Shown: positions 9,201-12,200 of the stretch, piece by piece | How the letters are laid out: each line of letters starts with the position of its first letter | How positions within the stretch are numbered: position 1 is the first letter of the stretch | NCBI GenBank assembly: GCA_964035545.1 | Contig: OZ037771.1 | Coordinates: 13,577,133 to 13,641,132 of the forward strand | Source of the DNA: Bugula neritina | Lineage: Eukaryota; Animalia; Bryozoa | Direction: 5' to 3' | DNA: 64,000 bases | Position numbers and translations under genes: made by a program | The notes under the pieces: generated by a model | The model's database searches: none | What the model saw: only the letters and a program-made list of their open reading frames with translations | Told to the model about the DNA's origin: nothing

Positions 9201-12200
9201 ACATATTTTAGAATAACCAACCTCAATGAGTCTCCATTAAAAACCTTCAACATTAAAGTTGAAAACTCTCCTGACTGTCTCAGTGAGAGTTGTCCAGTAG
9301 GATATAGAATAGATGGTCTCACACCAAATGCTGGTAACATACCGACAGGAAATGGAATGGGTAGATCTTTCACCTTCACAGTTGAACAAGCAGTGAAGCT
9401 GTACAAAGAGAAAGTGATGTCGCCATCTGAAGAACTAGCGAGTCTTTCTGATCTGCTCATGACATCACAGTTGATATACTGTTCTGATAATGGGGCACAG
9501 TTGCATGACAGATTTATGGAAGAAATAGCTACATATGAAAAAGTTACAGCTCAAAATGATCAGAAAATCAAACAGAAAAGAGTGGAGGGACTTTCTCTAG
9601 ATTTACAGAAATATGATTTTCTCCCAGAATTTCGATTTCGAACTGTTGTTGGTGAAAATGTGAAAGTAAAGGAAGACATTTTTCGTTACATCACTCTGTT
9701 GGCTACTAATTTAAACATTGCTCTTTGTTTACAGCTAAACTTTCCATGGAAGGTGTACGATGCAATTTATCAGTCAGGTATAATTTCCAAAGAAAGTCTG
9801 AGATACCTTCACATGATCTTGGGATTCTCAATATACATGAGAACTATGGCATACATCACTATGGGAACTCAAAAAGCTGAAATCCTGTTAGGTACTCCCA
9901 CTGCTGAGATAAAATTAAGTAGAATTGCAAAAAGCAAACATTACTATTTGCCAAGGAAGATATTTGTGATATTTGGCTCAATACTGATTTCAATAAAGCA
10001 ATCCCTCATATCAAGTATGCACAAAGGAAACAGGCTATTGTCAACATTAAAGGAGAAGAGTGTGAGTGAATATTTAAAATCAGTGCTTCCCAGTGATTTG
10101 GTGACAGATAAACATGATTATATGACAATATGTGAAGTATTGTGTTATGTTGAAGACTCAAACACAGCCTTAAAGTACATATCTGCCGGTTCAGGTGTTG
10201 ATATCAGAAGTGTAGGGTATGAGAAATTTGTGAAACGTATAAGATCAAAATACAACACAAACAAGTCAGATGGTTTAGAGAAAAAGTATTTGGAAATGTG
10301 CTGTTTTTTGCTGATTATTAGTGACCATGCTAAATGTGCCATTGACTACCTGAGTTGGTTGATCAGTTACGAAACCAGTTGGTTTAATATACTGCAACAT
10401 AATAGACAGATAGCGGAATGTATGAACAGCCTGAGCAGATATAAATCTGCAAGAAATATTCTCATTCAGATAAAGTTTACACTAGAAGAAAAGCTCATGA
10501 TAGACAAGAACGAATCTCTTACTGAGTACATACTAAGAAAAGTAAAAAATTCTACTGGATTACCTGAGTATCTACTCAACCTGTTTCAAATCACATCTGA
10601 TCTCTTCTGCTTACTGGGTAAAACTAATATTCACTCATCAAATCCGGTGGAAGCTAAGTTTTATCTACAGCAATCTCTTTCTATTCATAGAATATTGTGT
10701 GAAAAGAAGTTCTTAAATAATACAAGACAATATTTGATAACAGAATCTGAAATTCTGAACTACTTAGGAGCTGCATGCTTCCATGCGGGCGGAAATAGCA
10801 CAGCACTTGAATATTACACCCAGTCAATAGAGATGATGAGAGCTGTTTATGGTGAACATACAAACCACCCTGATATGGCTATAAGCTATAGCAATATTGG
10901 TGCTGTACACACACAACTAGATAACTATGACACTGCACTAGAATATCACACCAAGTCACTGGAGATGATGAAAGCTGTTTATGGTGAATGTGCAAACCAC
11001 TCTAGTATAGCTGGCAACTATAATTATATTGGTGATGTACACAGGCAACTAGGTAACTATGATACAGCACTAGAATATTACACCAAATCAATAGAGATGA
11101 TGAAAGCTGTTTATGGTGAACATACAAACCACTCTAGTATAGCTGCCAGCTATAATAATATTGGTGTTGTACACACAGAACTAGGTAACTATGACACAGC
11201 ACTAGAATATCACGCCAAATCAATAGAGATGATGAAAGCTGTTTATGGTGAACATGCAAACCACTCTAATATAGCTGCCAGCTATACCAGTACTGGTAAT
11301 GTGCACAGAAAACTAGGTAACTATGACACAGCACTAGAATATCACGCCAAATCAATAGAGATGATGAAAGCTGTTTATGGTGAACATGCAAACCACTCTA
11401 ATACAGCTGTTAGCTATGGTTATATTGGTGATATACACACACAACTAGGTAACTATGAAACGGCACTAGAATATTGCACCAAATCAATAGCGATGATGAA
11501 AGCTGTTCATGGTGAATGTCCAGATCACTCTAGTATAGCTATCAGCTATGGTAATATTGGTACTGTACACACACAACTAGGTAACTATGACACAGCACTA
11601 GAATATCACACCAAGTCATTGGAGATGATGAAAGCTGTTTATGGTGAAGGCTCAGCCCATCCTGATCTTACAGCTGCAATCTTTTCTATTATAGACATCT
11701 ATTCAAAATTCAACAGATATGAACACTGTCTGTCCCTTTGCTACACTCCTGTGTTGAGAAATCAATGTCTGTCCAAAGTCCTCAATGGGATATCGGCAGA
11801 TTACATCATATCATCAAACTACAGAAGAGCTGCTCAGTTTCTGCAGATTGCTATTTCTAAAGCTGCTGCTCATAGCATAGAACAGGCTCACAACTACCAC
11901 CAGATGGGTAGATGTTACATGCTGATGTCATCATACAAGAAGAGTTGGTTTTGGTTGTACTTTGCTCTCTGTCTGTATCAGTTCATTCCCAAAACTAGAC
12001 AGGTCATTTTCTTTCTTGGTAAAGTACACCTGTCTATATCCCATCTACTTCTGCACACTGGTCATGTGACTCAGTCTCTTGAACATTGTGAAAAATCTCT
12101 TGACAATTTTAACAATCTCCCTGATGTCAATACAAACTCTGTTGTTCAAAATTTAAAAACCCACCTTCTACAGTTCTATGACTCATTGCATCTTATTAAA

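Follow-up and report, generated by a model that had tools for sequence, protein, structure and literature searches.

The stretch of DNA analysed here (the window) comprises 64,000 nucleotides of the forward strand of contig OZ037771.1 (positions 13,577,133 to 13,641,132) in assembly GCA_964035545.1 of the bryozoan Bugula neritina. It carries a two-exon gene of 1207 codons on the + strand (6250-12221; Table 1), in which a predicted nucleotidyltransferase half precedes a tandem array of tetratricopeptide repeats (TPRs). From the letters alone, the initial annotation had proposed that near-identical repeat units vary mostly on one helix face and form a modular, recombination-diversified recognition code in an animal protein, as in certain fungal NOD-like receptors (NLRs). 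As a description of the evolutionary mode, a recombination-diversified array is supported by the follow-up, and the ligand-contact positions of the units appear to be under diversifying selection.

The gene belongs to the animal (the bryozoan), as had been assumed, because its GT-AG intron is seen spliced in a public contig (run X9) that fuses positions 6308-6337 and the following AG straight to 8688 and onward. Bacterial contamination was ruled out by this spliced intron, the 15.8-Mb contig and the bryozoan relatives of the protein: the closest named protein is a B. neritina hypothetical protein (80% identity), followed by Watersipora subatra proteins (31-35%). The public-read evidence consists of contigs of four runs over 8400-12250, mostly 33-234 bases in length. 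The first methionine in the open frame of exon 2 appears only at codon 223, and this exon shares its frame with the ATG at 6250. An out-of-frame ATG at 6240-6242, 10 bases 5' of the in-frame start, may indicate a short upstream open reading frame or a mis-set 5' end, and the intron carries very long TA microsatellites (7839-8321, ~200 copies). No signal-peptide-like stretch or membrane segment was seen in exon 1 or in the frame, as judged by eye.

Table 1. Features of the nucleotidyltransferase-TPR gene (positions in the window)
Feature	Position	Strand	Remarks
Exon 1	6250..6339	+	ATG + 29 codons; hydrophilic
Intron GT...AG, 2348 bp	6340..8687	+	GT at 6340, AG at 8686-8687
Exon 2	8688..12221	+	1177 codons + TAA stop; stop-free frame, start common to paralogs
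Predicted GlnE/DrrA-like nucleotidyltransferase, then helical domains	8688..10601	+	Pfam DUF294, AlphaFold2, Foldseek
Polymerase-beta-type catalytic motif G-S-x10-D-x-E	9096..9140	+	residues G137, S138, D149, E151
Degenerate TPR-like helices, then partial unit (helix B only)	10602..10856	+	helix pairs in AlphaFold2 model; partial match of unit hidden Markov model, frame residues 701-723
Six full TPR units, 44 aa / 132 bp each	10857..11648	+	starts 10857, 10989, 11121, 11253, 11385, 11517
C-terminal TPR-like cap, degenerate	11649..12218	+	kept among paralogs, not homogenised; helical in AlphaFold2 model

Tandem Repeats Finder reports a single array at 10799-11648 (period 132, 6.4 copies, 86% matches, zero indels) that lies in frame within the long open frame of the + strand and is translated into six full units and a diverged seventh. 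The six full units share 80-90% identity in DNA and 66-82% (mean 73%) in protein, and the partial seventh shares 59-67% DNA identity with them. The tandem of six in-frame 132-bp TPR units proposed earlier is thus present, but its description as almost identical goes too far. The array clears the curated Pfam cut-offs for TPR profiles by a wide distance (TPR_12, 215.9 bits against a cut-off of 30.1, E-value 5.8e-65; TPR_10, 168.8 bits against 27.5). An AlphaFold2 model of the C-terminal 539 residues, with a mean predicted local distance difference test score (pLDDT) of 80.8, consists of helix-turn-helix pairs stacked as a TPR superhelix, in which helices of 16 residues (helix A, unit columns 5-20) alternate with helices of 19 residues (helix B, columns 24-42). 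The best Foldseek matches of this model are consensus TPR proteins (CTPR), LGN/Pins, OGT and KLC1, with E-values from 1e-11 to 1e-8. Judged from the model, the array is predicted to form a TPR groove of the peptide-binding type. The C-terminal cap shows many invariant columns in the paralog alignment.

The six helix-A strings read in the initial annotation are exactly those encoded by the frame. In the aligned units the hypervariable codons fall in columns 9, 12, 13, 16, 19 and 20, which reproduces the reported spacing of i, i+3, i+4, i+7, i+10 and i+11, and a ten-residue block and the block MMKAVYGE are nearly fixed across units, also as described. Residue variety in this gene is enriched threefold at the six columns; that it lies mostly on one helix face is an overstatement, as 24 of the 44 columns vary and the six hold about 40% of the variety (hand count). 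Alignment of the units to consensus TPR proteins with HMMER places unit column 8 at TPR position 1, and the variable sites become TPR positions 2, 5, 6, 9, 12 and 13, all in helix A. Positions 2, 5, 9, 12, 13, 33 and 34 were found by Magliery & Regan to be the most variable across TPRs and to lie on the concave face, and TPR1 and TPR2A of HOP contact their peptides via positions 2, 5, 6, 9, 12 and 13 (PMC1261162). Since the HMMER numbering coincides with the HOP contacts, the variable sites correspond to the ligand-contact set, which bears out the proposed identity of variable face and ligand face, and they would line the concave groove in which TPR domains hold extended peptides.

Column variability was also determined in two larger, independent sets, 96 full units from 18 close paralogs (subfamily 1), with full frames taken for 17, and 119 units from the distant subfamily 2. 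The ten most variable columns of subfamily 1 comprise TPR positions 2, 5, 6, 9, 12 and 13, three helix-B positions (24, 28 and 31) and the residue two before helix A. All six helix-A positions are again among the top ten of 44 columns in subfamily 2. By our own arithmetic, the hypergeometric probability of finding six in the top ten is ~3e-5 for each set.

These paralogs are part of a large family. The enzyme half has 66 matches in its own genome (216-Mb assembly), i.e. at least 66 related loci, and the best 142 matches of the array all fall within the nucleotidyltransferase-TPR family. Seventeen of the 66 loci, at 77-95% identity, are organized in tandem clusters on contigs C5 and C7, the latter with two neighbours of this gene; the remaining loci show ~30-37% identity and have open frames of up to 2267 codons. 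Nearly all copies have intact open frames of 1000-2267 codons. Subfamily 2 (L038-L041, L044 and L046-L048) shares ~33% identity in the enzyme half and carries 10-23 core units with 81-92% DNA identity. The longest array seen in the family is that of L038 (G000:C6:388400-395800), whose 2267-codon frame holds 23 consecutive homogenised 44-residue units with 90% DNA identity.

Arrays differ less from one another at synonymous sites than the flanking domains do. Between this gene and its C5 paralogs, the proportion of synonymous differences (pS) is 0.25-0.29 in the enzyme half, with a proportion of nonsynonymous differences (pN) of ~0.08, and any unit compared with any other unit gives a pS of 0.12-0.17 and a pN of 0.13-0.15. 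Within the C5 cluster, pS is 0.183 in the enzyme half versus 0.114 in the units, where pN equals 0.114, and the three units of L032 differ almost solely at nonsynonymous sites (pS 0.015, pN 0.113). Unit number ranges from 3 to 8 among close paralogs and reaches 23 in subfamily 2. The flanks of L027 and L031 are 2% apart, yet the two genes have 6 and 8 units, with common blocks out of register. Between this gene and L021, the flanks are 2.7% apart but the second units 17%, and unit 1 of L025 is identical to unit 1 of L027 at 132 of 132 bases, with flanks 7.9% apart. An exact 396-bp duplication of three units is found in L021, and near-exact duplications in L037. Across the genes of subfamily 2 the last two units are kept position by position and the core is homogenised, a conserved edge and homogenised core being the pattern expected from unequal crossing-over. 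The recombination postulated in the initial annotation is borne out by unit number and order that differ between paralogs with flanks 2-3% apart and by units and blocks that are exactly identical within and between genes. Among paralogs, repeat number varies and units are exchanged both within a locus and from one locus to another; the sequence comparisons indicate that units have been reshuffled between these genes.

Two paralogs deserve mention in their own right. In L021 (G000:C7:13560232-13565032), which lies upstream of the window, an in-frame TAA stands inside the array after the 396-bp duplication; this combination may be an assembly artefact or the trace of a very recent unequal crossover in a gene that is now truncated. 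L035 (G000:C5:11794320-11799120) has, among the close paralogs, the array that is homogenised least, and this array is kept unit for unit in the homolog P0003 from a different (JGI) sample; the exception is helix B of unit 7, which in P0003 matches that of its own unit 5 and is a probable short conversion tract.

In order to avoid circular choice of sites, the six positions were chosen beforehand, on the basis of this gene and the literature, and were then tested on other genes and on subfamily 2; circularity was rejected on this ground. Each unit was paired with its nearest unused neighbour to obtain independent pairs, and differences were counted by the Nei-Gojobori method. In the closest pairs, the ratio of pN at the six sites to overall pS is 3.3 in subfamily 1 (confidence interval (CI) 2.0-5.6; 16 pairs, this gene excluded) and 2.3 in subfamily 2 (CI 1.5-3.6; 40 pairs), and the same ratio at the other columns is 0.34 and 0.56, respectively. 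The predicted excess of nonsynonymous change (dN/dS above 1) at the variable sites is thereby found in paralogs other than the gene from which it was predicted. Maximum-likelihood (ML) estimates of the nonsynonymous-to-synonymous rate ratio (omega) under the GY94 model are 1.55 at the six sites versus 0.64 at the rest in subfamily 1 and 5.67 versus 0.54 in subfamily 2, and omega = 1 is rejected by the likelihood-ratio test at P = 0.028 and P = 3e-18, respectively. Site by site, the expectation of change above neutrality holds in both sets for positions 2, 5, 9 and 12 (and for 31 in helix B) but not for positions 6 and 13. Synonymous differences are uniform along the unit (pS 0.05-0.07). Mosaic or patchy gene conversion, which could inflate the helix-A differences, was rejected as an explanation of the excess because of this uniform synonymous rate. 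Base changes at the variable codons are mostly A-G transitions, as in other codons, and form an ordinary spectrum that is not adenine-specific. Taken at the level of sequence comparison, the results argue that the contact positions of the array are under diversifying selection.

The N-terminal half gives the protein a different partner from the one that the fungal comparison would suggest. It matches the Pfam family DUF294 of polymerase-beta-type nucleotidyltransferases (28.2 bits against a cut-off of 21, E-value 2e-6), and the catalytic residues listed in Table 1 do not vary among 22 homologs, the most distant of which shares 31% identity. An AlphaFold2 model of the N-terminal 638 residues (pLDDT 78.6) finds as its best Foldseek match the Legionella AMPylase DrrA (6yx5_B; E-value 1.6e-5, template-modelling score 0.51 on the target), and further best matches are both halves of the Escherichia coli glutamine-synthetase adenylyltransferase GlnE (1v4a and 3k7d). 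A polymerase-beta fold is thus combined with a G-[GS]...D-x-[DE] metal-binding motif, and the N-terminal half is modelled as a nucleotidyltransferase of the GlnE/DrrA type. The likeness to GlnE, DrrA (SidM) and the DUF294 family lies in the structural matches and the common G-S...D-x-E motif, whereas sequence identity to GlnE and DrrA is only 12-13% and the solved relatives are without a TPR array. No Pfam match to a NACHT or NB-ARC domain was obtained in the 1134-residue frame, and the structural matches of the N-terminal model are to DrrA and GlnE and not to the signal transduction ATPases with numerous domains (STAND), to which NLRs belong. As the central nucleotide-oligomerisation domain of NLRs (NACHT/NB-ARC) was not found, the protein is not an NLR.

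An Atlas search returned DUF294-TPR clusters in eukaryotes and Chlamydiota and one DUF294 cluster with SidM_N, which suggests that DUF294-TPR proteins occur in other eukaryotes and in Chlamydiota. Amoeba-symbiont chlamydiae (P0075 from Neochlamydia sp. and Atlas cluster 6 from Chlamydiota) have proteins with DUF294 and TPRs, one of them with F-box domains, and raise the question of a transfer between eukaryotes and intracellular bacteria. Two contigs that encode distant homologs are eukaryotic-looking, with sparse short gene calls and one Separin fragment. No published description of this family was found in the literature searched on Bugula TPR proteins, DUF294-TPR proteins, the expansion of bryozoan gene families or concerted evolution of metazoan TPRs.

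Several known systems share features with this array. The TPR, ANK and WD repeats of fungal NLRs are well conserved within an array but polymorphic in repeat number, and positive selection acts on their concave side (Dyrka et al. 2014, PMC4986451); this precedent had been cited correctly in the initial annotation. The fungal TPR case, Podospora locus Pa_2_10340, was modelled on kinesin light chain, and highly internally conserved repeats, defined by >85% amino-acid identity between units over at least 100 residues, were present in just 0.8% of the repeat proteins of Metazoa in that study (PMC4986451). The bryozoan family resembles the fungal NLRs (HET-E/HET-D/NWD) in units homogenised by recombination within and between paralogs, variable repeat number, large clustered families and selection on a few unit positions that map to the concave binding face, as assigned by alignment and the published TPR analysis. 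It differs in its GlnE/DrrA-like nucleotidyltransferase in place of a detectable NACHT/NB-ARC domain, in its animal host and in a variation of unit number known here among paralogs only. The likeness to HET-E/D drawn earlier accordingly stands for the evolutionary mode and falls for the family. Among the paralogs of this gene, L037 would qualify as highly internally conserved (mean 89%), and the others have means of 64-83%.

The classic animal case of this mode is the zinc-finger array of PRDM9 (e.g. a passage of PMC8925151), likewise a coding minisatellite with concerted units, selection confined to contact residues and a specificity set by number and order; PRDM9 is a single gene with DNA-binding C2H2 fingers, in contrast to a TPR solenoid of peptide-binding type joined to an enzyme domain at no fewer than 66 loci. 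The NB-ARC-TPR and ROCO candidate receptors of Ectocarpus have shuffled TPR modules, variable ligand-face residues and expanded families (PMC3341825, PMC11378527), but in the alga one TPR is encoded per exon and exons are shuffled, whereas the bryozoan array lies in a single exon and has another partner domain. HOP TPR1/TPR2A, LGN/Pins and kinesin light chain share the fold, according to Foldseek, and HOP uses the same helix-A positions for contact; these proteins, however, are each encoded by one conserved gene, their repeats have diverged, their partners are fixed, and they show neither homogenisation nor diversifying selection. The bryozoan array thus works like the fungal NLR and PRDM9 systems without belonging to them.

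The explanation that we favour, with a probability of roughly 0.65, is that a homogenised and diversifying TPR array attached to a nucleotidyltransferase gives the animal a germline-encoded library of surfaces for binding protein ligands that change rapidly. The six units are the homogenised core of a TPR superhelix, which makes up the C-terminal half of a cytosolic-looking protein. Two processes act on the array at once. Through unequal crossing-over and gene conversion, whole 132-bp units are gained, lost, duplicated and swapped, both inside a gene and from paralog to paralog, which keeps scaffold and silent sites alike; selection favours amino-acid change at helix-A positions 2, 5, 9 and 12 and leaves positions 6 and 13 and helix-B position 31 free, or favoured, to vary. 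Each unit would supply a few specificity residues, and the order and number of units might spell a quickly rewritable binding specificity. The likeliest ligands would be non-self, namely microbial, viral or symbiont proteins; because the animal is colonial, conspecific proteins are possible as well. Non-self recognition would rank ahead of roles in symbiont control or allorecognition. The nucleotidyltransferase half might AMPylate or UMPylate the protein held in the groove, or might be switched on by binding.

Several observations weigh against this explanation. This gene itself falls below the 85% threshold for highly internally conserved repeats (66-82%, mean 73%); L042, L043 and L045 have ordinary diverged TPR arrays, and the diverged array of L035 is matched unit for unit by the homolog P0003 from another sample. 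Positions 6 and 13 are individually about neutral, and the likelihood-ratio test of subfamily 1 reaches only P = 0.028. The ML tests use a fixed tree and ignore recombination, for which reason the pair counts were given more weight. The concave-face assignment is based on homology alignment, helical periodicity and the published analysis.

Housekeeping functions have to be weighed first among the alternatives. Endogenous clients are commonly recruited by TPR domains, and GlnE and GlnD, both fold matches, modify host regulatory proteins; the paralogs could therefore be housekeeping nucleotidyltransferases that partition endogenous substrates, each groove having been tuned once to a host substrate in a past subfunctionalisation with no ongoing arms race, and the unit-for-unit conservation of the L035 array in P0003 is what such enzymes would show. 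This alternative can be considered unlikely, however, since array number and order differ between paralogs with flanks only 2-3% apart, the clades are recent, genome-specific tandem expansions and the at least 66 loci are many for a housekeeping role. The closest unit pairs show the highest omega, which indicates that change is recent and continuing.

A quite improbable alternative is that the array is a recombination-prone coding minisatellite without selection for change, its variable columns being merely the least constrained exposed positions. In TPRs generally, constraint is weakest at the exposed positions of the concave face (PMC1261162), positions 6 and 13 evolve at about the neutral rate, and omega of whole units is near 1 in all-against-all comparisons. 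A neutral by-product is difficult to reconcile, on the other hand, with sites chosen a priori that exceed the synonymous rate 2.3-3.3-fold in two independent subfamilies, with intervals that exclude 1, with the uniform synonymous rate along the unit, with the rejection of omega = 1 by the ML tests and with open frames of 1000-2267 codons that are intact in nearly all copies.

A role in allorecognition, in which the arrays would be polymorphic self/non-self labels or readers for colony fusion and rejection like the fungal het genes, has a slim chance. Bryozoans are colonial, highly polymorphic allorecognition loci are carried by colonial invertebrates according to a passage of PMC3342096, and the evolutionary mode is that of fungal het-d and het-e (PMC4986451). 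A signal peptide or membrane segment was, by contrast, not seen by eye in this protein. The known determinants of allorecognition in animals are cell-surface proteins. A search of the literature found no genetic data on bryozoan fusion loci.

That a dedicated retroelement-like or somatic mechanism rewrites the variable codons is hardly credible: the limitation of variation to few codons of a homogeneous repeat does recall the targets of diversity-generating retroelements, but the base changes are dominated by A-G transitions as elsewhere and are not adenine-specific, for which reason a retroelement target of this kind was rejected, the variants are fixed germline differences between paralogs of one assembly, reads and contigs over 8400-12250 show no joints, insertions or deletions, and no reverse transcriptase match was found in the seven largest other open reading frames of the window (at least 150 residues).

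Among these seven frames, three match NHL repeats and four match nothing. The NHL profile matches are weak (E-value ~1e-4) and concern frames of 227-308 codons at 17637-18320 (+), 22357-23283 (+) and 60425-61270 (-), which may be exons of NHL-repeat (TRIM-NHL-like) genes and possibly represent another local family. Elsewhere in the window, a non-coding-looking stretch contains a 29-bp tandem repeat (27495-27704; 7.2 copies, 96% identity), and an AG dinucleotide microsatellite of ~146 copies (46046-46336) adjoins the most GC-rich 2-kb block.

Concerted units with diversifying contact residues are a hallmark of recognition molecules in conflict, such as fungal NLRs, PRDM9 and the variable lymphocyte receptors (VLRs) of lampreys. 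The occurrence of this mode in an animal TPR array that is joined to a protein-AMPylase-like enzyme, in place of a NOD domain, points to an undescribed class of candidate receptors or effectors in a phylum where hardly any genes for immunity and allorecognition are known, and it makes testable what the arrays recognise and whether nucleotidylylation serves as an immune output in animals. Furthermore, ~200 natural TPR units with an identical scaffold that differ at 4-7 positions may guide the engineering of TPR binders. It is conceivable, if only as a tentative extension, that bryozoans, and perhaps other invertebrates with DUF294-TPR genes, possess a non-NLR form of innate recognition in which rewritten TPR grooves direct a GlnE/DrrA-like enzyme to rapidly evolving proteins of foreign or allogeneic origin and couple their recognition to AMPylation, UMPylation or nucleotide-based signalling. 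If true, immunity, or the control of symbionts and colony, would in effect have an arm that acts by programmable post-translational modification.

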